A stretch of DNA of 61,340 nucleotides, counting the filler, from Bipalium vagum (lineage: Eukaryota), in assembly GCA_037834085.1 (NCBI GenBank). It is 3 parts of 3 records of this genome, joined end to end, with 100 filler letters (N's around TTAATTAATTAA, not from the genome) between each part and the next. Parts side by side here need not be neighbours in the genome. Positions count along the whole stretch, not along the records: positions 17,457 to 41,410 come from JBBMKC010204268.1; 2 more parts are not named here. One strand, written 5' to 3'. Positions 19,246-39,959 of this stretch are shown piece by piece (positions within the stretch are counted from its first letter, which is position 1; the number at the start of each line of letters is the position of its first letter). Below the pieces are notes generated by a model. The model was not told the origin of the DNA, did not search any database, and was given only the letters and a program-made list of their open reading frames with translations. The translations under genes were made by a program, and so were the position numbers.

Positions 19246-22200
19246 CATGATTGAGGGAGTTTGTTGAGGTCCTGCTGGTACAGATACTCCAGGAATTATT
19301 CCTCCTGCATTGTTATTGGTAACCGAAATGCCTTGAGTGCTGCCATTGTTGGTAGAATTAATAGGCATTTGTTGATTTTGATATGATTGATATATTACAT
19401 CATGTGAACCAGGAAATTGATGTTGAGCTTGCCCCATCTGGTTTTGCTGAATGTGACCAAGCATGAAATTACTATTTTGTTGATTATTCATTGATTGGGG
19501 AATTGTTTTTTGATTCTGAGGAATATGTGAGTTGTTGTTGTTATTATTGTTATTATTATTATGTTGTTGTTGAGGATAGATGTTGGATGGGTGGCGATAT
19601 GCGGGAAATTGTGAATTGTAAGGGGTCATATTCTGCTGCTGAGATGTATGATGTGCAGCTAATTGATTATCTTGAATTTGCTGAGATTGTACGGAATGCA
19701 TTTGATTAGTGTTACTTGATTTTGATATATTAACATTATTCGAGGAAGAAGAATAAGGGGTTGATTGCAATTGAAGACTGTTAAATGGAGGAGTATCACC
19801 TCCTCCTGACATTTGACTGGATAGGCGAGCCAAACTAGCAAGACTAGCTGAAGTCAGATTTTGGGATGGAGAACTTATTGATGAAGAACAATAAGGTCCG
19901 TTCTGACTTGTTTGATTACCAGAAAATGAGCTACTGGCGGAGGCTGATGATACATGATTGGAAGAACTTATGGATCCAATGGATTTTAGATCATTCATGG
20001 GAGAAAATGATTTAATTGGCGACATCAATTCATTTTTGATTTGTACAGAATTAGACAAAACCTGGTTGTCAGGTATTGATAACCGATGAGGCATATTTCC
20101 ATTTATCACATCCTGATAATAAATATTTCAAATCAACATTTTTTTAGACAAATTGAAAGTTTACTCATAAAACGTTAATAATCCGAGAAGCGTATCCTTT
20201 GTTATAATAGATACATTTTAATAGATTATATGATATATTGAAGAAAATTGGTAAGAAACCAAAAATTAAATTAGAATTAAACCAAAATTAAATTAGAAAT
20301 TTATAAAATAAACGATCTACATGAAGTTAGAGAAAGGAAAATGTTTGAACTTAATAATACCAATTTTCTTTTCAATTCAAAAGAGTAAAACTTAAATAAG
20401 CATAAAATTAACATAAAAAAATTAATTTTCGCAAGGAATTGTTAAAGTGTGAAACAAACTGATATACGTAACCTCTTTATAAACCAAATTTTAGGCTATT
20501 ATTATTATAATAATTAATATATCTTGGTATGTTAAAAAAAGATTGAAGATAGTGATAAAATATATGATTATATATTTTATTAAATAAAGATAAAAGAGGA
20601 CAAAAAATTTAATTAAAAAATATCTTTAATATTTGTACTATAAATATTTGCAAATTCCTTAAGTCCTTTTCATTGGATTTTATTTTAGAAAATTTCCAAA
20701 AGCTTCTTCAGTTAGTACAAAATATAATAATGATAAAATTATTCCATCACCTAAATAATTAAGTCTAGAATACCAGTTAAATTTTTCCACCAGTTCAGAA
20801 AAATTAAAATGCTGTCCTAACTTAAAAAAACTGTTCAAAAAGAGAAATGTCACCCTTTACTAAAAACATATCCAATCAAGTTTGTTTTTTGTCACTGATC
20901 GAACAAATATATTTCAAAAAATCTAGCTTAAGGTTTTTATAAGGAAAAAACCTTAGTTTCATTTATTGAAAAATACGTATTTGGAAAGATGATTTAAATA
21001 TAAATTTCATCTTACAGTAATAATCCATCATAAATAATTACACTTCACAAACTCTTAAGCCTAATTTAATTGAACAGAATATGGAATATTTATTAAGTGT
21101 GCAATATAGAAGATAACATTAATAAACATTATTTTCAAAGTAAACAGAAAAAAAGTTCAGAGGTCTTAATATGTTCATAAAAATCCAAAGATAGAATAAA
21201 ACATTGTGAAATGAACAAAAAGTCTGAAATATGATATAGAAAATAATTTTTAAATACTTAATTAATTCACTGTACTAATACAAATATCTCTCAGGAATGA
21301 AAAAACTTCGAAATCTCAACAATAAAATGAGCTGTTAATTATCTTAAGTAAAAAAAGAAAAAATGTTTCTTACAGTTAAAATGACAATTAACCTCAAAAG
21401 AACTTTTTAAAATATCAAGATGAATCTTAAAAACGGATTTTTTTGGACGAAACTTTTTAGTGAAAAAAATCCCTTCTTAAGGACTCAATTCCTTAAATAC
21501 ACATTGAGCCAAACCAATCAGGATTCCTGTTAACCGACATATCCTGTTTGTGGATATATCTAATTTATCATTTTTGAAATGTTCCAGAAAATCTACAAAG
21601 TATTTCAAAAAGGTAATAAAATATTAGAAAACAGTTAAGTCCCTGTTTACGGTTTTCTAAGGTAGCAAGAAATCAAAAAGCCATTCACATACATTATGGA
21701 AACTTATCGAAGATTTCAGATTTTTTATTAAACTAAACATTTTACACCAATTACAAATTATACTTCATAAATTGTAAGTAATCAGCTCATAATTTTTAAA
21801 TAATGAAATTTCATTAAAATTTTTGATCAAAAAATAACCTAATTAAAATTGAGCTTTTAATATTTATTTTTTAAATTAATAATAGACATAAATAAGAAAA
21901 TGTAAAGATGAAACACAACTGATTAGAATTAAAAGTGAATTATATAAATTTAATTGGTGTTTTATAATAAAGGGTGTTTCACTAAGAGCTACTGAGTGTT
22001 ATTGTTAAAGAGAACATTTAAGGTTTATTTTAATATAAAGAAACAAATTAAAATTACATATAAAAAATAAGAATACATAATATCGGTCAAATGACTGTCG
22101 AAATTTTGTCATAAGACCTTATTCTTTCCTTAAAAATCTTGATCGTTTTCAAACATAAATCTGGTGCAATTTCGCTAATCACTTCTTGAATATTATCTTT

Positions 22201-25200
22201 CAACTGTTTAATGCCTTGTGGATTGCTTGTGTAAACGTCGCTTTTAACATAGCCCCAAAGAGAATAATCAAATCGCAAAATCTTGGCGACCATTTGATAT
22301 CACCTTATTTGGAGATAATTCGGCCCTCAAACTTTTTTTGCAATAAAGATATTGCTGTTTTGGTTGTGTCGCATGTTGTACTGTCTTGCTGGAACCATAA
22401 GTTATCTAAATGAGACCATAAGAAAATCTGTTAGCATTTTGCGATATTGTTCCCCATTCACCGTATCTGAATTCCCTTCTCGAATTCCAATCAAACTTTC
22501 AAATGAAAGACCACACAAAAGACCAACAAGTTATGGATGCAAGATTTGTTGTTTAATTTCTCTAGGATCGTCAGAAGACGAAATACGATAATTTTGTTTG
22601 TTTCCTCGCTGATAATGATTTTCTTTCATACATTTTGATCAGCCGCTTTGTTTTTGAGGACCCAATCGACAAACGTACGACGTTCACCATGGTGTAAAGG
22701 TTTTAAAAACTGAGTGAAATGAATTTTTTAAGGTTTCAGTTCCAAATCTTTCTTTAAAATTCGCCATACTTATGTGAACGGCGTCGAATTTACAACTTTG
22801 AGAATTCCTTTAAATTTCCTTTAATCATCGCAACATTATCATCTGAACGGATCAAGTGTTTTCAAATTTTTGAATAATTTACGGATTGTTTTTTCTGTGG
22901 ACAATAATGCAGACTAAAAATATCCTTAAGTTTTCAGATTTTCATTCATATTGACCAGGAACTCATATTTTAAAACGATTAAGTATTTTGAAGAAAAAAT
23001 AAAATCTCGTGAAAAGTTTTGACAGGCATTTGAATGATATTATCTTTCGTTATTGTATTGAGTTGCTTTTTATATTAAAATAAAGCTTTTGATTTTTTTT
23101 AAATTTAAACTTTTTCCTCAACAATAACATTCAGTAGCTCTTATTTAAATAAACTATATAATAAAATAAACTTAAATAAATAACCAAGTATACTTAACTA
23201 GTAAGTTAATATATCTGAGAAAATCAATAAATATTTTGTAAATAACTTTTAAAAGATAAATAATATTAATGGTTCTTTTACTTCAATAAAATTACCATTG
23301 CACAATGAGATTATCTGTTGATCAAATATTGTTAAAATAATAAACTTTTCCGTGTCCGCTGAATGATTCGTACTCAGTCTCGTTACGCAAAAGTAATAAT
23401 TAATGATTTCCCTATTTAGTAAGTACATATGCAATGAAAATCAATTAACGGTTTTAATCTCATAATTTAATTTATATTTGATATAATTACTAAAAATTAA
23501 AGATAATTCGATTTTAAGCATGATCAATCTACAACCGTTGCCGACCCCCCCCCCAAAAAAGAACAGTCTCGCCTATTATTATAGTTAAAGATATGAAAAT
23601 GAAAATTTAATACTTGAAATTAAAGATGAATGATACCCGACCATTTTTAGCATTTCTTTTCCTCCCAATTTATCTATATCGCAATAATACAAATAATGAA
23701 TTTCGTATATATGTTAATGGGTACTTAATTTACATTTATACTATTTATATCTTTAATTTTCCAAATTATTTTTTAGTAATTTCTTTTTTAGATTAAGTAA
23801 TTACTGTGTTGGATTACTTGAGTGACAGTTTTCATCTCATCAATTAAAATAATAAATGCTAATTAAAAAATCCCATGTGATATTTTATAACCGTGTATTA
23901 TAAATAAATTAAGCGGATATTTCCAATAAAAAAGACCCATTTGAATTTTTTATAAAATAACTCAATTTTAAAAGGTTTTTTTTATTTTCTGCCAAATTTA
24001 TATTTAAAACAATTTTAGTATAATTTATAGAAAGAAACTGTTCACATATGCTTTAAAAAATCAAAATAAGGAAATTTTCATTTTAAAATAATTTTTAATC
24101 AATAAAGCAACTGAAATAATTTTGATTTTAATAAATAAAAAATCCTAATGAAATCAATTATAAAAGTTCATATTTAAATTAATTTCTCTTTAGAATTAGA
24201 AAAAATTTTTAATTAAAAAAACTTAAGGATCTGAATTAATTGTCATCACTAATTTCTTAAAAATAGACAATATTGAAATGTGTATTGTGGATAACTGAAA
24301 AAATTATTCAAATTTTTTATTTGGCAATTGAAATAGAATAATTTAAAATTTCATTCGAGAATTTTTAAATATTTAATTATCTGATTTAGAGAAGTTAAAA
24401 AATTCAATTATTTAAACAAATATATTTATTTTGAAATTAAAGATTCGCGTTCATTGTAATCCCTTGTCAGTAACACTAAAAATGACAAAAAACATTTTTA
24501 ACTATTTGTTTTCCAAATAAAATTCTCAATGCATTTAATCATTTCCATTTTATACAAAAAATGATATTGAGTGAATTTATTCAATTTTTTATTTCTAAAT
24601 TGGAAAAAATAATTATAAAAATAGCTTTTATTCATAATTTAAATTTTTTACTTAAAACACTGTGGGATAAAATTTTATTCAATATTTTTTTTACCTCAAT
24701 TTAATACTTAACTTTTCTTTTTTTTTATATTTGATATAGTTTCCCTAATAAAAATCAATTATCTAGACTCAAAAGAATTTTTCAATTAATACGATAATTT
24801 TTGTGTTATTAAAAACCATTTCATTCATTACCTGCGAAACCATAAAATATTAATTTTATAAAAATTATTAAACACTCATCAACAATTCAAAAAAATATTT
24901 ATAAACATATTGTCTGTCGTGAGACAATAGAAATACCACTTGTTTAAAAAAGATGCAAATGATTTTTTTTCTAATATTTAAGAATGATAGATAACGTTTT
25001 TTAGATTAAAATTTGACACTTACACTTCAATTTATATTTTTATCAATAAAAAATAATGAAAATGAATAAGAAAAATTATAGAAATTTAACTTTTATGATA
25101 CAAAGTAATGAAAACGGAGAGAGAAGTAATATTTTTGTAGATCCAATAATTTTCTTTTAATTTAGTACTTAAAGTCATTTATTTAATTATTAATTGGCAA

Positions 25201-28200
25201 AATAAATTGAAATAGTTTTGGCAAAAGTTTTGGAATTAAAATCCATCTTAAATTAGACTATTTGAAAAGATTAAATAATAAATATTTTTAACAATGTTTA
25301 AAATTACTGTAGACCAAAGAAGAAAATATATATTTCTATTTTTCAATCATTTTCACAAATTTTAATTTTTTCATTATTTGAGTAACGTTGCATACTGCTT
25401 AGAGGTGTTGATAGTTGAAAAATTGTTTCTTAGAAAATATATAATCCATGAAACATTTTTCTAAAAAAAACCAACTAATCCACATACTGCAAAAATGGAC
25501 ATTAATACATCTTAATATTAAAATCTTAGAATTAAAAAAAAATTAATAAATAAATATTGTTATTATATTTTTGTGGAGGTAATTATATCCATTATCGAAC
25601 ACTGACATTAGGAAAAATTAAAGTAAATTTATTTTAAAGAAAACTCAAGTGACATGAAGAAGATTTGATTGTGACATATTAATTAATAACTTCAATAAAC
25701 TGGAATCAAATTTTGTCACATTAAAATATCGATTAAAATGTTAGGTGCAAAAATTAAAAGTGAAGTACTTGAAAATTCGACAAATTTTTATTCATCATAA
25801 GCGCTTCATCGTGAGAACCAACTGTATTCATCATTGGCGACATAAATCTCTGCTGTTGCTGTTGGTCAGTGATGGAAATAGCATTCATTTGAGATAAGTG
25901 GGGTTTTATATCATTGGAAATGAGAGGCAAGTTTGAATTGGATGTGCAAGCAACAGACGTCGTTACAGTATTTGTGGTCACAGATCCAGTAGATGATGAC
26001 TGGGTAGCGGTAGATTTGGCTGTTGATTTCCGTTTTTTCGATTTTGATTTCGAGGATGTCGATGTTGTTGTCGTTGTACTGGAGTTCGACGAAACATTTT
26101 GTCCTGTAGCCATAGGTCCGTTACTCGCAACAAGAGCTGCTGGAGGGGTTGAACCCCTGTGATGAGGATAAATACCAGAAAAATTTTGGTGCATTGGATG
26201 ATGATGTGAAGGCAAATGTGGATAATTTGGGTGTATCATACTCCAAGAAGGATCACAAATCTGTGGACAGCGAGCTTGTTGTTGATGTTGCTGCTGTTGT
26301 TGCATCAATATAGCCCTTTGGTTTGGCATTGGTGATTCATGATGATGCGGATAATACATTGAATGAGAATGATATCCCGGAGGAGGTGGTGCTCCTATTA
26401 ACTGATATGGCTTTTTGACCCCTCCGCCCGACGGATAAAGAACCCCAGAAGATGGCTCCATAGGTACAGCATGAGGTGTGAATGATTGTCTGATGAGATT
26501 TTGACGATGTCCAGGCATCACGTTAGAAACAATGGGTAAATTACTCGGAACCATTCCAGGATTTCCAGGAACCGGGGGATTGGTATATGGAACTATTTCT
26601 CCAGCGGGAAATCGGTTGTTCATCATATCATGAGCTTGTTTTTCTCTCATATATTCCATTCGCAACAGTTCCCATTGTCTTTGAGCAGCTTCACTGCAAG
26701 GTGGATTTTCACCGCTAATCATGAATGCTTGTAGTTCAGCAGGTGACATTTGCGGGTTGGAATTAAGGTGATACTGGGCTAGAATCGGTTGTCTTTGATC
26801 CGCTACAAATGGATTACACTGTCCTGTGAAGTAAAAAAACAAATAATCAAATAATCGGTATGCATCTTTAATTAAGTTTTCAACGAAAAATTAAAATTAT
26901 TATTAACATTGTTAAACAAGATAGTTCTTTTGGGGTCACATTTTTTTCAAATATATGTGTCACTATATATAAAAAGGTCATGAAATGATTCAATGATTTA
27001 TTTTATGCAATTTTCTTATTTTAATTACATGATTTAACATGACGAATTACAGTAAAATATGACACTTGATATCTGTCAAATATTTAAAAATATTTTTCGT
27101 AAAATATCTATTTTCTTTGTTTTTCACTGACTCCATCTCGAAATTAATATTAAGGGTAAAATCAGTCTGTTCCAATAAAGCTTTTTGATAGAAGAGTGTA
27201 AAAATATCATTGTTCCAATTTGATAAAACAATTTCAGAAAAAAGTAATTTTACTAAAATATTTTAAAAATGATATTCATCATGATTATCTGATATTATAT
27301 CTTTTCAAAAGTAACGTCCCTTTTTTCTGCGAAAAATATAAACAGAACATACACACATAGGTATATTTATTAAAAAACAATTTGATGATAAGATTTCATG
27401 AAAACCTCATTCTTCTGAAATCATAAATTTGAATATTGTTGTCTTATTAAGGTTATTTTCATTTATTGATTATTATTAAATTATTTAGTTAACGATTATA
27501 TTTCTTGTGTTGACCAAAACTGAAGATGGTCTACATGACGAAAGTGGTTATGAATGCCATAACCAAACTCTTTCTGAATTGATTTCTTTATGCTTTTTGA
27601 TGTTGTCACAATGGAGAATAACTCCTTTTAAGATTATTAAAGTTGTATAATTTATTATTTTTTTCTACCTGAATACAATAGATATCTGATTTTATTGTTT
27701 CACCAATTTTCAGTATCTCGAAATGAAGTTGAATGATTAGATATCTAACTACCAAACCTTATTATATCACCCCAATATCTATCCATTTACAATTGACATA
27801 TCAATGTTCAAATTTTTCTTATTAATAAATCTTCTTGAAACTTTTGTGAATTACTTCGCTACCAGAACTCAGATTTCTAGGCATTTCATAAGTAACCTGA
27901 TATTGAATATCGTTTATCGTTTATATTTAGGAGCGTTTCCTAAATCCAAATTTCCAACCCTAAAATAAGCAAACTATCTTTAGGATTTCCTTATCTCGAG
28001 AATACTGAGATGAATTTACCCACTCGATTTTATTGCCACAAAATATTTTTAATGACGAGAATTTTCGAGAATTCCAGTCTTCTTCAACAGTCCCATGAAG
28101 ACTTGATTAGCAAAAATTATGGTGCTTTATGTTAGTTAACCAAATGAAAGTGTGGCACATTGCAAAGAAACAATTCATAATCCAGTCTTTGAAGTCTACC

Positions 28201-31200
28201 CTTTGTTTGAGGTGCATTGTATTTTTTGTATCTTTTAACATCCTTTTTTATTCCGCCACATCTAGCACTCTTTTAATTTATTGCTACGACTGCAATCAAC
28301 TAGTTTCAAAATGTGATAAATTCTTATTTATTTGAAGTAACTAATTAGTCCTTTAAATTAAAAAAAACTGAGATTGTGTATATTTAAATTACGTTTTAGA
28401 GATAAAATATATCATACCCAGCTCAAATATAATTTGTCATGTCAACATTAAACTTTTTGTAGTATCACAATGCTGAATAAAGATTCTTGAAATATCTTGT
28501 AGCTTAAAATATCTAATGGAAATTTAATTTTCCAGATAAATTTTAGGAACATTTATTTTTTCATTTATCAATTTATAAGTCTTCCTTCCGAAAATAATAA
28601 ATTTAAAATATGTAAATTTTATTTGGAGAAATTATAGTCTGTCTGCACAATAGAAAAAATTATTTATATTTTTTTTGTTCAAAATTTTTTATTAGCCGAA
28701 TTTGAATAAAATTAACATTTTCAAAATTTTAATCAATATATTTTTATAAAAATAGAAATAATTACTGCTTAAATATAAAAACTTAAACATTTTTTTCAAA
28801 TTTCAATATTTTTTGGAATTTCAACATGCAATAATTGAATAAAATATTAAATATCCTTAAAATTATTATTATTATTATTAAAGATCTTTAGTCTAAAAAT
28901 AAATTTATCAATTCCGTAGTTATCAATTAATTGTGAATCTCCCTGAAAGTTATTGTCAATAATGAATTAAGAAAATTAATATTGATTGATAGATGCATAA
29001 GATTTAAACAAAACAGTTAGAAAAATCATTTTACACAATTGAGAACGTCAAAAATGAAAATTTGAAAGCATTATTAATATTTTTTGCAATTTAATTAAAT
29101 TTTTTTGTAAATTTGTCATTTTTAGAAATTTTTAAATATAAATAAATAATTTATAATTGAAAAAAAATATTCCGAAAAATTTCTACAGAAAAAAGAAATG
29201 AGCCATTTATATATAAAGTCAAATTCTAATAATCGAACTTCAATGGCATGTTTGTCACCATGATGACCGGTGTGTGTGTATGCATGTCTGTGACTGGTTG
29301 ATTAAATGAATGAACGTGTGGAAGTTTCTTTGTCAAAAGGCATACAAACCAACAAGCAGGCAAACACACACACACCACAACTGCAACTACTATTATTATC
29401 ACCACTATTTTTGACAGGCATTTCAATGTATTGATTAACTAGTGATAGAACTTATTGACAAAAATTATTGAGTACTTAACCGCAATTTGTTTTATATTAG
29501 TCGTTTAAACAGAAATCACAACTAAAAAAAATAGTAAATTTATTTAGAACGATGATGAATTTTTGGCGTACACAGAAAATTCTGAAAAAAGTTATTTTTC
29601 ATATAAAATATTTTTGTGGATAAGAATGGACTTGCGACATTTTTGATGTATCAAAAAATGATGGTTAATAAATTTTATCAAAAAATAATCAATAAAATAA
29701 TATCTACCTGAAAGTGTTAGGTGCATTGAATTAGATCCATTGTCTGCCATTAACGGGGTTCCATCGTTATTACTGCTGCTATTATTGTTGCCGTTATTAT
29801 TATTATTACTGATCATAGAGTTCATGTGACCCATTTCATGATTTGACGTTTCCATTGTCTTATTGAATTCGCCGCATCCAAAAGTCACAGGCATAGACAT
29901 CGAGCTGACTGTAGACAATTGATTGGAAGAAGGTGGCTGCTGGGCATTGACATCCACCATTACCGGTGCTGTGCTGGGTGTTGAAGTGGTCGTTGTGAAA
30001 ATCGATGTTTGTGAGGAATTTGAAGTGGAGTTTGTGACTGATTGAAATTTCGATTTCGTTAACGTCGATTGAATTTGTTCTAGTTTAGCCATTTTACTTT
30101 TGCGATTTTCAAGCTGTTTTTGTGTCAGTTGTTCGTATGGTTTTTGAAGTCCAATCAATCGATTTTGATTATACTGCTGTTGAATAAAATCAATAACCGC
30201 TGGATGATTATTGTGAAACTGAAAAAGAGTAGTTCGTTGTCTGGTATATTCTAAAGCTGCTTCATTGGCCATTTGCGTGGTAAATACCATTGCCTGCCCA
30301 GAGGGATTTTGAGTTAAATTTGAACCTGGTCCAACCATAACCATGGATGCATTAGAGGGATATGAAAATCGATGCTGGTTTGGAGGATATCTAATCTCGT
30401 TTCCCACCATAGGATCTAGATATAAAAATGTAATTTTTTTAAAGGTTTAATACATATTTCTGAATCTAATTTAATATTTTCCTATCTGTCTAAAATCTGC
30501 CTGAACTAAGTTCGAATCAAATACATCAAAAATTCTTTAGAATTCAGAAGATTGTTCGCTTATTAGTGAAAATTTTTAGTAAAAGAGAAATCAGGATTGT
30601 CTGAGTGTAATAAACTATGGTTATTTCTCATTCATTATATTTCCCATATGCCATAATAATTATCTTATTAGTTAAAATTTCTTAAAAAAATCCTTTCCAA
30701 AAAAATCAAATTAAGTTTTTGAACAGAGAAAAATACTCACCTTTGTTGAATGGAATACAAACTATAGTCCCTAACTGATCACATTATTACACTAATTTAA
30801 TAAACCTTTGGTGAAATAATAATAATCATAATAATAATAATAAGAAGAAGAATTATAATAATATAATTATTATTATAAGTACTAATAATAAGAATTCCTA
30901 TTTAATAATTTTATTTTATTTCTCAGAAGTGTGAAAGATAAGAAATATTGAAGAAAAGACTATTATAAAGATCTACTTGAAAAAGAACAAGAAAAATGCC
31001 AATACGGAAAAAATTATTTGCCAAAATTTTTGAAAGATTTTAACCTTCTGTAAATCAATAATTTTATGAAAATATAGAGAGCAAAATATAAGTACTAGAA
31101 AGTATTCTCATATAGCGCAATAATAATGTTTAATTTTTATGTTTAAATCATTCGTTTAAATTGTTGCAATATTCTTTAGATTGATTATGTCATGTAATCC

Positions 31201-34200
31201 ATAAATGATCCAAATAAGAGCAAATAATATTTAAATAGTCAGATTATGTTATACTTAAAAATATCTGGCTTTGCGACAGTTTTTATAGTACTAATTTCTG
31301 GGGAATTCTCTAAGATATTTTCAATGATTTGTTGACAGCAAATAGAAATTTGAAAAAATCTGCTATATAAAGAAATACAAGTATATAAAGACGTGTAATT
31401 AAACAAAAATGAAAAAAGTTGCGATTTCTAACAAAATAATGAAAAGGAAAAGTTTGTTGATAAAACAATTCAAGATCAATAACTATTTTCAAATAAAGTT
31501 AGCGGTTTATATTTAAATAAAAATATTAAGATAAAGTTCTTTATGCGAACTGTTACTTCTGAGATAATTAATTCCGAATTCCAGAACTAAAAATGAAGTC
31601 AACAAAATTTTAAAGATTTTGCACCAATCAAATTAAAGTGATTTTCTTAAAATAGATATATTAAACAATTTAATTTAAGCCATAGAACATTCAAAATAAA
31701 AATCAAATTTATCTTTGATGCAGTTCCATAAACATCATGTGTTACATTTGATTATTAGAAAACAAATATTTACGTAAACAAATCTATAAAAACAGTCAAC
31801 ACATCCTCTTATGACTCTTTATGTTTAACCTAACAAAACATATTAGATTTTATTCTAATCTCAAAGAACAGACTTTAATCAATCAATTAAAAACAAAAAA
31901 TCCTTTTTTTATTAAAAAATTATTGATTTTCATTAATGAGAAAATCTTTTGAACTTCATCTTTCTAATAGGGCCAAAAAAAGTTTTGCATTTAAACTTTT
32001 TAAATCCTGATCAATATTCATTCAGTCGGAAAAAAATCAATCGGGTCTCATTAATTTATCTCCGAAATTTGTGATCGATATTTTTCCATTACTTGTTAAA
32101 TATGATGGACGAAAACTTTCCTATGATCAGTTTTTTTACTAATAATTATTTCATTTATTCTTGTTTCATTCAATTAATAATCACTGTATATTTCAAAAAT
32201 TACAATCTCCAAAATAATTTCTTTCTTCCTTTTTTTTACTGATCAACTGTTTGTTGAGTATTTTATATTGATCTCAATATAATTCTGTAATAAAAAATGT
32301 TCTAACAATGTTCTAACATCTTCACAGTTTAAAAAACCACTAATTCAAAATAATATCATATATTATGATAAATATCATTTACGCAAAAAATTATAATTTT
32401 AAATATCATAATTAATAATAATGACAATAATTGGAAAACGAATAATAAAAGTAATATCTTTTCTCCTTTAGTGGAAAATAAATCTCTTTTAATTATAAAA
32501 AAGAGACAGAAACATCATTAAAATCGCTCTAACATAATTAAGTGGCTGTGATTAAACTATTTAAACAATAAATCATCTTTCTTGTGTTGGTATAAAAATA
32601 ATATTTTCCTTGAAATATCAGTCCGGTGACGAAATTTCTGATTAATCTTTAGAAAATGACATGTTTGAACAAAACGTTATTTCTTTGGAAGTTTTGTCTT
32701 GAAGACATAAATGATCTGGAAAATTTTGCTCAAAACTGAGTTAATAGTATAAGCTGTCCCAATAAGGATTTTAATTCTCATTGATTTCAATTATGAAATT
32801 GTTACATGTTATGTTTTGGCAGAGTAGTTCGAACAATCGTTAAATTTAATCTTTTGACTTTAATTACATATTATGACAAGATTTAAGACCCTGAAATAGG
32901 TGATTAGAGGATTAAATCAAAAAGTCTAGAAAATGTGTTAATTCAAAAAATGAGAAAACTAAGAAATTTTGCAGAAATGTTTTTGTCTGATGCAATCATT
33001 TAAGATTTTATCAAAAGTTCAAAAAATTGTCCTGTCAAATTTTCTAAAAAGTGTACATTATGAATTTGAATTCGTTCAAATGTAAATAACACCTCAGGGC
33101 ACATTCTAAACAAAACCATTCATTCATATAAGCAAATGGTAAATTCCACAGAACTATGTTATTGTTATTATTTCATAAAGTATAATCTGAAACTGTACTT
33201 CATTATGGTGTTTCATACAATCCATTATTTATTAGCATGATGCTTATAGAATGTCTGATTTCGAGATATATTTAACCTGTCAAATTAAAATGAAAATAAA
33301 CTGATCCAAAATATTCATTCCATTGTTAAAAAAAATTAATATTTAAAAAGAATGAAAACTTAAGAATTTAAGAAATCTTAAAAAGAATTCTCCGCCTTTC
33401 TTGGTTGGGAAAAAAGTTACCTTAAAAAAATTAAATAAGAAAATCAATAAAAATTCGTAGATAATACCAATATCAATAAAAATCAGTAAAAATTCGATCG
33501 AACATTGGTTTTGCGTGTTCTCTTACAGTTGTTATTAATATCCAGGTCTTTCATAAATGATCATAAAATTTATAGCGAAATCCAAAATTTCTTACGAACC
33601 AACACTATACATATCACAAGATTTGTAATTAAAAACCATTACTGTGCTAAAGAAATACAATTTCTTTTGAATTTCACTATAAATATTAAAACTCCGCATT
33701 AGGGTGCTTAATATTTTAGGGATTCAATTAATTATAGATTATAATTAATTAATTATTAATTATAGTTCGTTTAGAGTTGACATGATTTAAGAAATCCAAC
33801 AAATAAATGACCGAGGCATATGGGAAAATACGTTTGTATTATATTTAAATTAATTTTTGTTTAATTTAAAGTATTGGAATTCATTAAATAACCTTGCATA
33901 TGTTGAATCATTGGAGGATGGTACAGATTCTGGTGGGATTGTGAATAAGACATAGATATATTTGAAGGCTCAGCTTTAGGTTCACGACTCTGACATGCAG
34001 CCATCCGAGGAGACGTTTTAATCTGATTGTTATCAGCTGACGGTGTTGATGGGGCTCCATGAACACTGTGTGCAGGAGATGATACTGATCCATAAAGAGG
34101 TGAAGTCATATGGGCCTGAGAGCCTGGATAAGAGCTACTGCGAAGAATCATCTGTTGATTTTGAGCGCCAACATTAGAATTCATATATAATGATCCCGAA

Positions 34201-34666
34201 AATGAATCTAAAATAACTACTGGTTACTTACTGATTTTTCCACTATGGTTTGAAAAACAGCTATTTTTTGAAAATTTGAAAAGTTATCATTCATTTTAAT
34301 CACAAGAGAATATAGAAGAAACAGAGATGAAAACCAAAAGTAAAAATTTTGTTTATGATTAAATTTATAACAAAAAAATTTATGAATAAGAGAATTATTT
34401 TTATCTTATTATTATATTGCGGAAAATAAAAACTTATACAAAATAACAAAAATTGCAATAATTTCAATGATTCCTTTTTTTCAAGAAATAATCATTGAAT
34501 TTTAAGTAAATTAATATTTTTATGTGAAAAATCTAAAACTAAAAATCATCAATTAGAAAATTTCACACCTCATGGTATTAAACTTTACCAGCCAAATAAT
34601 TTTTAAATGAAAACAAAAACAGGAACATTTATTTTTATTATTCAATAAAGAATCAACAAATAATAT

Positions 34667-34706
<40 letters not shown>

Positions 34707-37700
34707 TAATATTATAATCCATTGAAATATACATTTTCTTACGAATAACATGAATTATCAATTAAACCATTTCTGAATTTTTATCTTACAAATTTTAATA
34801 TTTTCTGTAAGACTATTTAACAAATTAGAGATAAGAAAAAAGAAAGCGAGAAAATCATCACTCAAAATATTTTGAATTAAAAATTATTAATTAAATAAAC
34901 AAATACCAACTAGAAATAATTATATAGTCAGAAAAATACTTAAAAATCAAATCACATTAAATAATTTAAAATCAAATCAATTTCCAATTTTATAGAGATC
35001 ATGTTCATTTTATTAAGGACCATGAGCACAAATATGAATCAAAAATAATATTAATAATAATACTATTACTAATAATACATTTTAGAATTAATAAAAGATA
35101 CATTTCCCAGAAAGAAAAATTTGTCCAGTTCGAATTGGAAAAAATATAAATCGTCTTCTAAAAAATTGAACTTTTTAATCATATTGTCATTTTATTGTCA
35201 ATTATTTGATTGTAATGTTTTAAGAGTGATTGATTGATAATAATCAATATATTTTTCAATTAGTTCTGATTATATGCATATATCACATAAAGTGAGAAGC
35301 ATTGATATATAAAAAATATTCTGAAAAATCAATTACTAATGCCAGTACAGTCATCACCTGGATTATCGGACTTTTCTTGCTTAACAGTGACATTGGAAGA
35401 ATCAATACAGTTGTTGTTACCACTGTTGGGACCATTGTTTCCTAATGGTGTACACACTCGATTTAGTCCGTCATTATCTTGAACTTCATACATGTTTATC
35501 GAACAGTTTGAAATTGATTTTGGAATGGTAACATTTCCATAATAATCCGCAGAACTGCCACCATTCAATTCATTTTGTTCTCTATTCAATAAATTTGGAA
35601 CAAGCAGTTCTGTATTTTCTTGTGACAATTCACCACTTTCCAATGATGTACTAACCACTTCCAGCAAATGATCTTTAAGGAAAGCTCTCAAATCACCTTC
35701 TTCGTCTGAATGTCCTAATGAATTGATGAAAGTTCGCCATTGATCGATGGTCGGACCAACAACCACATCCCATTGAGCAGACAGAGAACTTTGTGGTTTT
35801 TCACGATAAAGACGCAAATCTGAATTAGCAGGTTGGAGTGTAATTTATAATTTATATCATTAAATAATATAAAATTATCTATCAATGGGAAAAAAATTTT
35901 CTTGAAAAAAGAAAAATTCGTTTGCATAAAGCTTTTCATATTCAATATAAATTTCATATCAAATTATTTATTTGTTATTTCATTTGATTGTAACCAGATT
36001 TAAAACGGTCACGTTATGCAATTTTTTTTTCTACCCTAGTTCAATAATATTTAATAAAATCATCTTATATTTGACAATCGTAAATAGATTATGGTTCTTC
36101 TCTCTTTTAAAATATAATTTATTAATCCAACGAACATTATAATATAAAATATCTCTGGTTTTTAATTTTTCTAAACCTATAGAATCATTATATAATCCAT
36201 ATTTCTTAAGCACATACTTTCCATATTTTTTTATTAAAAACTAACTGAACATTAGAAGAAAAACCCATCGATAAATTATTATAATAAAAATAATTGATCT
36301 AAAAAATTTAAATGTATGTGCAAGAGATGAAAATATAAAATATTCTATTTGATCGATTATCTAATGAAATTTTTTAATAAATTCTCAAAACTTTATCAAT
36401 AACCTATTGATGATTTTTTTTTAATTTTAGAATAGACAAATCATATCCCATTTTCTCAGAATCCATTTTCTATCACCATTATCCCTCAGAAAGACTTTAT
36501 CATATCAAATAAAAACAGTTTGAATTAAACGATAATTTTTCTTTAATCTCCTAAAATTCTCAACATATAGTTTTATCTTTCAAACTCGTTAACATAATAA
36601 ATTAAAAGAAAAGATGAACAAAATTCCTATATATCTGATTTACTTTTTCTAATCATTTTTCATTATTATAACTCGTTGAAAAACATCTTTAGAGCGAAAA
36701 AATTTAACATTTGTCTTATAACTAACTCAAACAATTATTTTTTATATATTTTTATTATGATTAATAAATATTGTAGTCAATTTATTTGTAAACTAATACA
36801 TTGATTATTAATGAAGAATGTGCTGAAATAAGTTGCCGATGTAATTTCTTTCGCAGAATTCGCGAAAATAGTAATTCAAAATTACAAAACATTTGTCATG
36901 CCCTGGTTCTTGCAAAATTCTTCCTGGTTAATATAAAATAATAACCATTGATTTTTGTACTATTTGAAAGTATATGAATAAACTATATAAAGGACCGAAT
37001 TTCAATGATTTACTTACTGCGTCATTAAGCATTAATGCTCAAAGAATGTGAAAAAAATCATTTTAATCATTAATAAATAAAGTTATTCCTTCTATCTCAC
37101 TAGATCAAAATCAGGATTCACCATAATATAATTCTTAATCAACAATCAATAATTTTGAATAAAATATCACTTGAATAGTGCAAAAAATAAATATTTTCTC
37201 TAATTTCTTTTAATAAATTCTTAAATTAACTCAAATATTGCTAATTCTTTCAGGATATAATTAATGTTATAATTCACTGAATAAGACAACTCAATAAAAT
37301 TTATTAAAAAAATGAAAAATGAAAATATCCAAAATTAAACTTTTTAATTGAATAATTTTAAATCAAAAAAATAAAATTGAAAAAATAATTTTTCATAAAA
37401 TGTTTGGTTTCTATATTTTCCCGGTTATATAATCATATTGTTCAGATCTTGAAAAGTTTATTTATTGAGACAATGTAATAATTTCACTTGCATAAAACAA
37501 GAAAATAATCACAAACTTATAACGGATTGATTGATTTATTAAATAAGGAATCATGTGAAACTAAAGTGTGCGTAAATAAGAAGTACTTCACTACATTTAT
37601 ACGGTGAAAGAATAATCTCATTAGCAAAAATAGATAATATCAATAGAATAAGAAAGTTAATAAAATTAATTAAAATATTAAAATTATTTAAAATAATGAT

Positions 37701-38375
37701 AATAATAATTATTATTATTAATTGAACAATTAAGCAATTACCATCCAAATAAACATAACTGCTGCCTTTCGAATCGGAACCGGCCTTTATTGCAAGTTCA
37801 TTCATTGAATCATCTGCAGTCTCTTCTTGTTTAATGTCACTAAATGGTTTGTTACCGCCACAAAAAGAATTATTATTATTGCCATTTGAACTGTTTCCGC
37901 TATTGAATCCATTCGGAGCAAAATTAAAATCGGGTAATTCATCATAAACAGTTTCAATAAGATTTTCCAAGAGTTTTGCTTTGTTTTCTGTAGTCAAGTT
38001 AAAAATTTGTCGTCCAGCACGCAACTGGAGAATATTAACACGGGCTGAAGTTCTTTTTTCATTGCTGAATGCATCTAAAGCTTTATCGACAGAAGAGATA
38101 GTGGCATTGGGAATTTTCAGAAATCTTAGAATTTGTACAACTAGGTACGCTAACGGTCGGTAATCTTGATTCTCCAATAATTTATATAAATCCTGTGACG
38201 GTATATTTAAAGTTAAAACAATTTAGACATATATATTTAACACCTGTAATCGGATTCTCGGAAATTTAAACCTCTGTTTATGCTGCACGAAAAATTGCAT
38301 CAAATATGGAAGTTTATAACGTTCAATATATTGAGTGGGAACAGTTGGGTCTTGATATATAAATGATATTGACAT
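19246..38375 (-). CDS. bcl9: BCL9/Legless-like beta-catenin coactivator with N-terminal DDT-WHIM1-WSD module; exons 38244-38375, 37742-38192, 35337-35819, 33893-34207, (30741-30770), 29708-30415, 25769-26823, 19246-20112; 3' end missing
   Basis: Junction phases 0,1,1,1,1,0,0, all GT-AG, giving a stop-free 4011-nt (1337 aa) frame. HD1 MVFTTQMANEAA..TLFQFH (~30207-30293); HD2 EQLTQKQLENRKSKMAKLEQIQSTL (~30060-30134); HD3 AQRQWELLRMEYMREK (~26639-26692). Also NLTSASLASLARL (~19810-19860), NLS-like KSKKRK, and Q/N/P/M-rich low complexity. The join between the DDT part and the BCL9 part is inferred from splice phase only. Confidence 0.75.
21968..23157 (-). mobile_element. Near full-length decayed rosa/DD41D-like Tc1/mariner element inside a bcl9-like intron
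   Basis: Imperfect TIRs (TAAGAGCTACTGAGTGTTATTGTT at ~21982 vs AACAATAACATTCAGTAGCTCTTA at ~23120). Transposase motifs WFQQDSTTCDT, GRIISK, DYSLWGYVKSDVYTSNP..I.QLKDNI, with frameshifts. Confidence 0.9.
34660..34715. repeat. (AAT)n microsatellite
   Basis: Run of aataataat with few interruptions. Confidence 0.85.
35653..38320 (-). other. DDT + WHIM1 + WSD (WHIM2/3) coding module (CECR2/RSF1-type) across exons 1-3
   Basis: DDT-like YKLPYLMQFF...FKFPRIRLQDLYKLLENQDYRPLAYLVVQILR; WHIM1-like FNLTTENKAKLLENLIE; WHIM2-like GSDSKGSSYVYLDDLRLYRE; WHIM3-like WDVVVGPTIDQWRTFINSL...LRAFLKDHLL. Confidence 0.7.
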
Positions 38376-39959
38376 TCTTCGATTGTTTATCACAAAATTT
38401 CTGCATTAAAAAATGTATATACAATTATATTTAAACAATTATTGATTACTGTATTGAAAAGATAACCTAGAGGCAAATTCAGTTTAAAGTATACATTTCA
38501 TAATTTATAATAATATATCTTTTTTGATCAATGGAATAAAGAAAATTATTAGTTTTATCACCCATATAATAGGAAATCAGTTATAGTCAAAAAAGACCGC
38601 AACAAAAATCAAATTCTGAAACATTTACAGTTACTTTAAATACAATTGATATTAGATGCATTCTACTTTCCAAAAATTTCTTTCCGCATGCAAATTTATA
38701 CACACATACTTTATATACTGCAGATACGATTAGACACACATACACACACAGTCAATGCACAATTGCTAAAAATAGTAATTTCCTTACCACTGATATACAT
38801 ACAAGCATTTACATATTAAATCGAATTTGGATGTCGACATTTGTAAGATTTATGTCCAGAAATAATATATTTCATAAACTTTGAATCAAAGTTTTCAACT
38901 TGAGCAGACAAATTATAAAAAGACTAAATAACTTTATAAACATTTTTCTATGTGTAAGATATTTATAAATGTAAATAATAACTTTAAACATTGTTGTCAA
39001 TATATAGTGCTAGGTGAGGTTTTATAAATAATATTAAAATAGAAATATATTATCTTTAGATGTACTTTATAAAAAAACAAAATAACTTCATACGAAAATA
39101 AGCTTAATTATAAGATAAATAATTAAATATTTATTAACTTAATTCAATTTCAAAAACTAGTACCAATTAACAACGAGAAAGTCATTAATAAGTTGAAAAG
39201 CAATAGTAAATATATATCACCAAATTTAAATTAATAAAAAAATTCTACATTTAATCAATATTATTAGCTGACAACAATAATCAATAATACGATATTTATT
39301 CTTAAATAATATTTATTAGAAAAGAATAAAAAACTATTGATTATCAGACTTACTTTGTAAATTTTCCACTAAATAATTTAAAACAAAATCAGAAGCATTT
39401 TAAAAAATGATAAAATTAAACCACTTATTTAATATATTATAATGCAATAAAACAAAGTATTTTTCAAAATTACAATAAATATAAAAATTTTATTAACTTT
39501 AAATGAAATTTGGTTAATTAAAAATTAAATATACATGATATGACAATTGAAAAATAAAATATTCACAATGTCAAAGTATTATAAATATCCTTTAACATTG
39601 ATTAAAAAATTATATTTGGCTTACTAATATTAGTATTTTATAATTCAAAATTTAATTTGATGTATTCTTAATTTAAATTAACAGTATATAGTAAATTAAT
39701 TACAATTAATATGATTTCAAATTTATAACAAAATTTTCAATAAAGTAAATTAATCTCTATATTTTATATACCGTTAACTTGATAATATGATATCAAGTAT
39801 TGTATTTATCTGTACATGCCTTTCAATAGACATTTAATGTATTAATATATGGACTATAAATTAAAGTAAAAGGATAAACTTAATAACTTTTCCTCTATAA
39901 TAAAATAGAAGTTAAATTTTAAAAAATCAGAGACAGTATTTACACATTAAATATTTTTA

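Follow-up and report, generated by a model that had tools for sequence, protein, structure and literature searches.

BCL9, BCL9L and Drosophila Legless are adaptors that make the Wnt enhanceosome responsive to β-catenin. They are long, mostly disordered proteins with short elements in a set order, namely HD1 (the segment that binds the PHD finger of Pygo), HD2 (the helix that binds β-catenin), HD3 and the C-terminal motifs, and for vertebrate BCL9 a link to BAF is known. The ISWI accessory subunits ACF1/BAZ, CECR2, RSF1, BPTF and yeast Ioc3 hold their ATPase by means of a DDT/WHIM1/WSD module, which lies at the extreme N-terminus in CECR2 and RSF1. Wherever a family with it has been characterised, it is, to our knowledge, a partner of ISWI. 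In planarians, β-catenin sets head-versus-tail identity. The residues of BCL9 HD2 that bind β-catenin are L351, H358-R359-E360, L363, L366 and L373 (PMC2478683), and HD3 has an invariant tryptophan followed downstream by an F/Y doublet (PMC5352222). The WSD motif contains a GxD signature, which a passage of PMC11789628 traces to Aravind and Iyer (2012). As for a connection between both systems, in Drosophila NURF (ISWI/NURF301) brings an ISWI complex to β-catenin/Armadillo (Wingless) targets. A direct contact between ISWI and Armadillo is credited to Song et al. (2009) by PMC2947479.

We analysed a stretch of 61,340 nucleotides from Bipalium vagum (the window; assembly GCA_037834085.1), in which the locus described here lies on JBBMKC010204268.1. 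Our preferred reading, to which we give a probability of roughly 0.6, is that a single flatworm gene begins in the window with its first seven exons, that its product is this lineage's orthologue of BCL9/Legless and that its N-terminal module recruits ISWI. The product would be a long, mostly disordered scaffold with HD1, HD2, HD3 and conserved C-terminal motifs, and its first ~330 residues are predicted to fold as a DDT/WHIM1/WSD-type module (N-module). We found no folded N-terminal module of this kind reported for BCL9 proteins. That a single gene combines a DDT/WHIM-like N-module with a BCL9 architecture is likely on the available evidence, and probably follows from comparative gene structure, a paralogue within the genome, fold and embedding searches and the spacing of the HD2 contact residues. 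The first-pass annotation had claimed a DDT-WHIM1-WSD module and BCL9 HD1-HD2-HD3 in one gene; these same lines of evidence uphold that architecture, whereas the Pfam matches that it would lead one to expect did not appear.

Reading of the sequence bore out the claim that seven minus-strand exons join through phase-compatible GT-AG borders into one stop-free frame (Table 1). The intron phases are 0,1,1,1,1,0, there are zero internal stops, and the exons sum to 3990 nt or 1330 codons. The motifs quoted by the first-pass annotation were also found where it had placed them. Its donor for exon 3, 35337|35336 (A|GTAATT), had the right phase 1 but not the probable position, which is a CAG|GT 21 nt upstream at 35358|35357 that is common to the paralogue and whose phase 1 agrees with the gene models of Clonorchis and Hydatigera. 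Exon 1 is covered by tblastn matches to orthologues, with which it has in common the intron position after RLRLQ, and its conservation with the paralogue sets in at 38376, exactly with the exon 1 ATG.

Table 1. Exons of the BCL9-like gene and the features predicted in them (positions in the window)
Feature	Position	Strand	Content
Exon 1	38244..38375	-	start codon 38375; first of the DDT-like helices; phase-0 donor CAG|GTGTTA
Exon 2	37742..38192	-	rest of DDT-like helical part 38192-37920, then low-complexity linker; ends in phase 1
Exon 2, WSD-like part	37781-37773		GxD signature (G-S-D), with first beta-strands
Exon 3	35358..35819	-	WSD-like part continued (LRLYRE motif, W-x10-W helix region), then disordered tail
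Exon 4	33893..34207	-	disordered linker; coding and internal, with phase 1 at either end
Exon 5	29708..30415	-	HD1-like segment 30293-30213; HD2-like segment 30128-30060
Exon 6	25769..26823	-	HD3-like helix 26689-26639; proline/glutamine-rich disordered region; basic KKRK patch 26050-26024
Exon 7	19246..20112	-	disordered; conserved LTSASLASLARLS motif 19857-19819; donor ATG|GTAAAT runs off contig

All seven exons are kept in a diverged paralogue of the same genome (locus C110038), and the conserved blocks between the two loci are these seven exons and no others. Every exon compared (exons 1-5) shows an excess of differences at third codon positions. For exon 2, which has 92% protein identity with its counterpart, the differences by codon position are 13/4/69, and for the whole of exon 4 they are 19/13/57.

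We searched the exons singly and used contiguous database orthologues as proxies for the whole protein. In tblastn, flatworm orthologues from Clonorchis, Paragonimus, Fasciola, Schistosoma, Echinococcus, Mesocestoides and Hymenolepis matched the window collinearly, with E values of 1e-34 for exons 1 and 2, 1e-19 for exon 3, 1e-15 for exon 5 (cestode orthologues) and 0.006 for exon 6; by sequence comparison, the exon chain is far beyond chance. For upwards of 15 trematodes and cestodes there are single gene models collinear with the seven exons, every one labelled hypothetical. In the Clonorchis and Hydatigera models, the introns have identical positions and phases. A motif table of 28 gene models places the N-module within one protein together with HD2/HD3 or HD1/HD2 and C-terminal motifs; HD1 is not recognisable in the trematode orthologues. 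The fusion had been proposed to be specific to the lineage of this organism, but trematodes and cestodes share it, and a monogenean likewise has the N-module. A phmmer search with exon 2 gave 13 proteins; four are unnamed, and the others are gene models of flatworms save for one weak match from Populus. The orthologue proteins are gene predictions, which could share a common fusion artefact. The Logan contigs with an Echinococcus exon are genomic rather than cDNA, and a search for RNA runs that contain the locus turned up a single run, DNA-like in kind, and none of RNA. A transcriptome-derived protein from Schistocephalus (P0046) begins after HD3 and has no bearing on the fusion. One Schistosoma cluster also contains proline dehydrogenase models, which may mean that models were mis-joined.

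This last cluster, as an instance of fused models among these annotations, fits an alternative in which two genes lie next to each other on the same strand. Reading through intron 3 leads to an in-frame TGA at 35331-35329, 2-9 codons past both candidate donors, where a small DDT/WHIM-like protein would end; a separate BCL9 would start at the ATG at 34184, 8 codons inside exon 4, with the acceptor at 34207 used to join a 5' exon or else a spliced leader, and with the first-pass annotation and the gene predictors having mis-joined the two. The codons between that acceptor and the ATG argue otherwise, as they evolve as coding sequence: the seven codons upstream of 34184 differ from the paralogue by four synonymous changes and one amino-acid change. 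Because coding-type conservation begins at the acceptor, upstream of the ATG, we regard exon 4 as an internal coding exon. Moreover, intron 3 holds no other conserved sequence, the read-through tails are not conserved, and zero loci in the genome carry one half alone. The arrangement is the same in both paralogues of the genome, and a trematode and a cestode agree with this planarian-like genome in the order and strand of the parts, in where the introns lie and in the phase-1 junctions. We consider two adjacent genes improbable, and treat the locus as one gene below.

The part of the protein after the N-module is most likely BCL9, as judged by the top PDB match of HD1, the nearest Atlas clusters and the exact spacing of HD2. 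A profile built from cestode orthologues and exon 5 of the window, run against 177,635 PDB sequences, ranked the BCL9 HD1 peptides 2vpb_B, 2vp7_B and 2vpe_B first, fourth and fifth; three of the six best matches are of this kind, and they are weak (E 0.72-1.8). The top three Atlas clusters for the BCL9 part are BCL9 homologues, with a score of 0.81. Because of the E value of 0.72 and the score of 0.81, we treat the HD1 match and the Atlas score as leads only. The HD2-like segment reads L-x6-N-R-K-x2-M-x2-L-x6-L, with offsets of 0, +7/+8/+9, +12, +15 and +22 that reproduce, gap-free, the spacing of L351, H358/R359/E360, L363, L366 and L373 (PMC2478683). The equivalents of L351, R359, L366 and L373 are kept and that of L363 is a conservative methionine, while N and K replace H358 and E360. 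The HD3-like helix, which is kept in trematode orthologues (E 0.006), has a tryptophan followed by Y at +7 and then M. It thus shares with BCL9 the tryptophan and a downstream aromatic (PMC5352222), and differs in having a single aromatic, not an F/Y doublet. In a further difference from BCL9, the gap between HD1 and HD2 is just ~28 residues.

The likeness to HD1, HD2 and HD3 might instead be coincidental, in which case the gene would encode a DDT/WHIM protein that is peculiar to flatworms, ends in a long disordered tail and has no relation to BCL9. With this would agree that the Pfam model of BCL9 HD2 (PF11502) gave no match to exon 5 or to the gene's contig at its curated cut-off, leaving the protein under the Pfam threshold, that the best PDB match has an E value as high as 0.72, and that searches aimed at BCL9 outside flatworms retrieved flatworm proteins only and no canonical BCL9. 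Neither phmmer with exon 5 (noise) nor the full orthologue profile (low-complexity matches only) gave a meaningful match among PDB sequences. What makes coincidence very improbable is the conjunction of the HD1 peptides among the highest-ranking of so many PDB sequences, BCL9 homologues as the nearest Atlas clusters, and HD2 contact residues at the exact spacing. The order HD1, HD2, HD3 and C-terminal motifs is kept in the motif table and in the collinear tblastn matches, and this order, with disorder elsewhere (pLDDT <50 beyond residue ~330 in the orthologue model), suits BCL9. In addition, a genome-wide scan showed no canonical BCL9 at any other place and no other candidate. We therefore retain the BCL9/Legless assignment.

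For the N-module, Pfam DDT (PF02791), WHIM1 (PF15612) and WSD (PF15613) gave no match in any exon, and these models and BCL9 gave none against 23 orthologue sequences at E<=10. The first-pass annotation had named a lack of DDT/WHIM profile matches for exons 1-3 as a finding that would refute its proposal, and such a lack is, formally, what we found in exons and orthologues alike. Because the Pfam profiles are blank, a DDT/WHIM assignment can be made only at the level of structure. Scans of the genome with the same three models left the gene's contig without a match and matched elsewhere, at a BPTF-like locus (C21843) and two BAZ-like loci (C232948 and C234437). An alignment of the N-module compared by hhalign with the BPTF-like and BAZ-like ORFs was not significant and placed the WSD motifs opposite each other, and phmmer of exon 2 against PDB sequences returned noise.

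The AlphaFold (AF2) model of an orthologue N-module has pLDDT values of 81-97 for residues 10-135 and 63-94 for residues 205-325. Foldseek of the N-module model gave no match in the PDB. VIA-align ranked Ioc3 (2y9z_B) best of 48,161 PDB representatives, with a Z of 9.3 and an rmsd of 4.8 over 223 residues (12-292 of the model), a match that we would grade as middling. By ESM Atlas features, the N-module scored 0.92, with 197 shared features, against a WHIM1 cluster; by structure, it had TM values of 0.50-0.62 to six DDT/WHIM1/WSD clusters. The top Atlas rows for our own N-module model were WHIM1 and DDT+PHD+WSD. The Atlas neighbours point to RSF1-like and DDT+PHD+WSD clusters rather than to CECR2, with which the first-pass annotation had aligned exons 1-3 by eye. 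The GxD signature hardly varies at its residues G210 and D212 in the orthologue alignment. The predicted succession of a helical DDT/WHIM1-like part and a GxD-bearing WSD-like part resembles that of Ioc3, ACF1/BAZ1A, BAZ1B, CECR2, RSF1 and BPTF. Unlike these subunits, the flatworm protein continues after the N-module into the BCL9 scaffold, with no bromodomain, PHD finger, WAC domain or AT-hook, and canonical BPTF-like and BAZ-like genes are separate from it in the same genome.

Would such a module still hold ISWI? The genome encodes an ISWI with HAND-SANT-SLIDE, and a complex prediction of this region with the N-module, run without alignment, scored 0.00 and carries no weight either way. We place ISWI tethering by the N-module at a little under even odds. 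A real one-gene fusion whose N-module no longer binds ISWI, being a diverged DDT/WHIM-derived fold or a CH-like (calponin-homology) helical domain plus a small beta unit, is somewhat unlikely; it would serve, for example, in linker-DNA or nucleosome contact, in dimerisation or in binding another partner. The drift below every Pfam threshold speaks for such a loss, and the helical half fits CH domains almost as well as Ioc3, with Z scores of 8.6-8.9 that come within 1 of the Ioc3 value for matches to residues 10-140 only. Ioc3 alone aligns over both halves, the family-annotated Atlas neighbours are all DDT/WHIM1/WSD proteins, and the characterised families with this module are, as far as we know, all partners of ISWI, which favours retention. 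The kept GxD signature predicts little on ISWI binding, because in Paramecium ISWI binding was not abolished when one GxD signature was mutated or deleted, the pulldown of the double deletion being inefficient (PMC11789628).

Were the N-module to bring in one of the ISWI ATPases that the genome encodes, docking of β-catenin on HD2 at TCF enhancers would bring a nucleosome-sliding motor along, and BCL9 would in effect be the signature subunit of an ISWI complex. We put forward as tentative the stronger proposal that the fusion is a 'Rosetta stone' for a BCL9-ISWI partnership, in which the motor would be brought straight to TCF enhancers. The fly link through NURF is non-covalent, whereas the putative ISWI-binding module of flatworms would lie within the β-catenin adaptor itself. 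A BCL9 that carried an ISWI-partner-like module across the phylum would lead one to expect that Wnt signalling and nucleosome spacing are directly linked, with a remodeller coupling different from the vertebrate BCL9-BAF link, and would suggest seeking a non-covalent link between BCL9 and ISWI in other animals. It would also bear on planarian head-tail polarity and parasite development, and give names to 'hypothetical' fluke and tapeworm proteins of medical importance such as Smp_170670 and CDS40823 of Echinococcus multilocularis. The architecture had been presented as undescribed, and we likewise found no description of it in the literature on BCL9/pygopus in planarians, on BCL9 with ISWI or DDT, or on Smp_170670. 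That it is neither annotated nor described may be because Pfam detects neither the N-module nor the BCL9 part.

Within intron 6 lies a short ORF reminiscent of the tail of a mariner transposase, to which Pfam gave no match. The contig edge cuts the gene, whose 3' exons lie on other contigs: the next exons, with the VNNTFVNAQLNVQQMNYQH and TPHTIQYLP motifs, are on C220685 and C220996.

Direct reading of the sequence confirmed that the seven minus-strand exons (ex1-ex7) joined in the first-pass annotation are stop-free, bounded by GT-AG and compatible in phase (0,1,1,1,1,0; 1330 codons in total), and the motifs quoted there were present at their positions. The region analyzed, 17457-41410, is contig C204268 of an assembly of 440 Mb in 272,664 contigs; exons were searched one by one, with contiguous database orthologues standing in for the spliced protein. 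G+C was 0.29-0.36 in the 1-kb windows with larger exons versus about 0.19-0.28 in wholly intronic or intergenic ones. The gene is truncated by the contig edge, ex7 closing with a donor, and the missing 3' exons were found on two other contigs, presumably one for each paralogue. Because they lie on separate contigs, we concluded that the intron after ex7 is long (>9 kb in the paralogue). Within the intron between ex6 and ex7 we observed a 68-codon ORF that may resemble the C terminus of a mariner-type transposase, although it had no match in Pfam.

Coordinates of the exons and associated features (window positions unless a contig is named)
Feature	Position	Strand	Remarks
ex1	38375-38244	minus	stop-free, GT-AG
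ex2	38192-37742	minus	stop-free, GT-AG
ex3	35819-35358 (first-pass end: 35337)	minus	stop-free, GT-AG
ex4	34207-33893	minus	stop-free, GT-AG
ex5	30415-29708	minus	stop-free, GT-AG
ex6	26823-25769	minus	stop-free, GT-AG
ex7	20112-19246	minus	stop-free, GT-AG
HD2-like helix	30128-30060
ORF in ex6-ex7 intron	22090-22293	minus	68 codons
Missing 3' exons	C220685 (L026 6229-6564), C220996 (L027 7130-6768)		carry VNNTFVNAQLNVQQMNYQH, TPHTIQYLP
Paralogue	C110038 (L025 2172-9688; L028 3220-7208)		all seven exons, order kept

A diverged copy of the gene, on contig C110038, shares 86, 92, 73, 68, 54, 64, and 60% protein identity with ex1 to ex7, respectively. In every exon compared (ex1-5), the third codon position carried an excess of the differences (13/4/69 by codon position in ex2, 19/13/57 in ex4), which points to old copies under selection and not to alleles. 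Since the copy is diverged and synonymous differences are numerous, the fused gene is taken to persist in this genome as two paralogues.

A phmmer search with ex2 against 1.84 billion representatives gave 13 matches, four of them nameless; the named ones were trematode, cestode, and monogenean gene models, every one annotated as hypothetical or unnamed, plus one weak Populus match. The relatives include Clonorchis, Opisthorchis, Paragonimus, Fasciola, Echinostoma, Schistosoma (Smp_170670), Echinococcus, Taenia, Hydatigera, Mesocestoides, Hymenolepis, and Protopolystoma. The proposed union of an N-module (the first ~330 residues, DDT/WHIM/WSD-like) with elements of BCL9 type in one protein recurs in the trematode and cestode models: in those of full length (1433-2568 aa) the N-module is followed at a long distance by HD2 and HD3 in trematodes, or by HD1 and HD2 in cestodes, and the motifs LTSASLASLARLS, VNNTFFNAQLNVQQMNYQH, and TPHTIQYLP are present as well. 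By tblastn, eight full-length models were collinear with the window (E 1e-34 for ex1+2, 1e-19 for ex3, up to 1e-15 for ex5, and 0.006 for ex6), and the neodermatan relatives are closer to one another than the window is to any of them, which places the organism among flatworms outside Neodermata or on its margin. HD1 could not be recognised in any trematode model, and none is encoded at the Clonorchis sinensis locus (L012, of protein P0005); an HD1-like segment is kept in cestodes and in the B. vagum genome, and the Pygo-binding element may have been lost in flukes. At 90% identity, the cluster to which the Schistosoma haematobium model (P0010) belongs also takes in proline dehydrogenase proteins, so some Schistosoma models may join this gene to a neighbouring PRODH gene, a warning on annotation chimeras among these models.

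Whether ex1-ex7 form one gene or two was judged on comparative evidence, as a search for RNA runs containing the locus found none. The Clonorchis model has the identical full phase series and shares intron positions after RLRLQ and YYYMD with the window, and the Hydatigera model is in phase 1 at all junctions from ex2-ex3 through ex5-ex6. In blastn between the paralogue loci the exons matched and no other block did, one conserved block beginning at the ex1 ATG and another at the ex4 acceptor. In the seven codons from acceptor 34207 to ATG 34184, four of the differences between paralogues are synonymous and one alters the amino acid; these coding-type changes argue that translation enters ex4 from upstream in phase 1, and on this comparison ex4 is coding from its acceptor onward. 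As for two genes in place of one, the stop just beyond the ex3 donor is uninformative because read-through tails stop within 2-22 codons in all lineages, without conservation; no locus with just one half of the gene was found in this genome. We estimate the probability that ex1-ex7 are a single gene at roughly 85-90%. A shorter isoform, through intron retention or an internal promoter, is possible. The first-pass end of ex3 preserved the frame (phase 1 either way) but probably not the donor: both paralogues share a phase-1 CAG|GT at the homologous position (35358|35357; 5271|5272 in L025), which is a better candidate than the A|GTAATT 21 nt downstream. Exons ex3, ex4, and ex5 are each phase 1-1, which, speculatively, fits assembly of the gene through exon shuffling.

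The assignment of HD1-HD2-HD3 to BCL9 drew no match from Pfam BCL9 in the exons, the genome scan, or the orthologues, and searches for non-flatworm BCL9 reached none; it was supported by HD2 spacing, element order, and ESM Atlas clusters. The HD2 residues required for β-catenin binding are L351, H358-R359-E360, L363, L366, and L373 (PMC2478683); the window helix has L, N-R-K, M, L, and L at the same offsets, differing in N-R-K for H358-R359-E360 and M for L363. HD3 is a helix with an invariant Trp followed downstream by an F/Y doublet (PMC5352222), whereas the window has W and one Y at +7. A profile of the cestode orthologues and window exons ranked human BCL9 HD1 peptides first, fourth, and fifth among 177,635 PDB sequences (E 0.72-1.8). 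For the Spirometra orthologue, the three Atlas clusters nearest to its HD1-HD3 stretch were 'BCL9 homolog' (score 0.81, a lead only), with PF11502 in 87-96% of members. Element order and disorder of the protein agree with BCL9, and a profile scan of contigs found no other BCL9 candidate in the genome. The gene is very probably the BCL9 orthologue.

The DDT-WHIM1-WSD assignment of the N-module failed by Pfam and gained support from structure-level searches. The three Pfam profiles matched no exon and, at E<=10, no orthologue; across the genome they left C204268 unmatched and matched BPTF-like and BAZ-like genes elsewhere. Under the condition set in the first-pass annotation, this profile result would refute the assignment. 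An AlphaFold2 model of the Echinostoma orthologue (23-row alignment) had pLDDT 81-97 at residues 10-135 and 63-94 at 205-325, with predicted disorder beyond ~330. Its best match among 48,161 PDB representatives was Ioc3 in ISW1a (2y9z_B; Z 9.3, rmsd 4.8, 223 residues aligned, spanning model 12-292), followed by CH domains covering residues 10-140 only. In the Atlas, the feature search returned a WHIM1 cluster (0.92, with 197 features in common) and the structure search six clusters annotated DDT, WHIM1, WSD, PHD, or WAC (TM 0.50-0.62 over 224-259 residues); with our N-module model, WHIM1 and DDT+PHD+WSD clusters ranked first. Foldseek of this model against the PDB and hhalign of the N-module against single ORFs of this genome gave nothing significant. 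G and D of GxD, the signature of the WSD motif (PMC11789628), are almost invariant in the alignment. A true relationship to DDT/WHIM is very likely. Canonical DDT/WSD genes stand apart from the gene studied, on C21843 (L003/L036), C232948 (L033), and C234437 (L034): a BPTF-like gene has DDT, PHD, and WSD in a single open frame, and two BAZ-like genes have WSD and PHD fingers, L033 finishing with a bromodomain-like stretch.

The architecture appears undescribed, as first supposed: a literature search found no description of a BCL9-DDT or BCL9-ISWI fusion, of Smp_170670, or of BCL9 in planarians. It would be of relevance to the Wnt and chromatin fields. HD2 binds β-catenin, HD1 the Pygo PHD finger, and HD3 Chip/LDB-SSDP; DDT/WHIM modules hold ISWI. 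A flatworm BCL9 with the N-module would bring ISWI to TCF enhancers, a tethering that we regard as a tentative proposal with slightly less than an even chance. Drosophila offers a precedent for ISWI at β-catenin/Armadillo targets, as NURF supports Wingless targets via ISWI-Armadillo contact (PMC2947479, citing Song et al. 2009). Proximity labelling of vertebrate B9L recovered BAF, and the main text of that study mentions no ISWI-complex subunit. ISWI genes with HAND, SANT, and SLIDE domains are present in the genome. SLIDE was matched at three loci, on C149725 (L013), C209075 (L014), and C205646 (L015), and L013 has Helicase_C, HAND, SANT, and SLIDE within one 634-codon exon.
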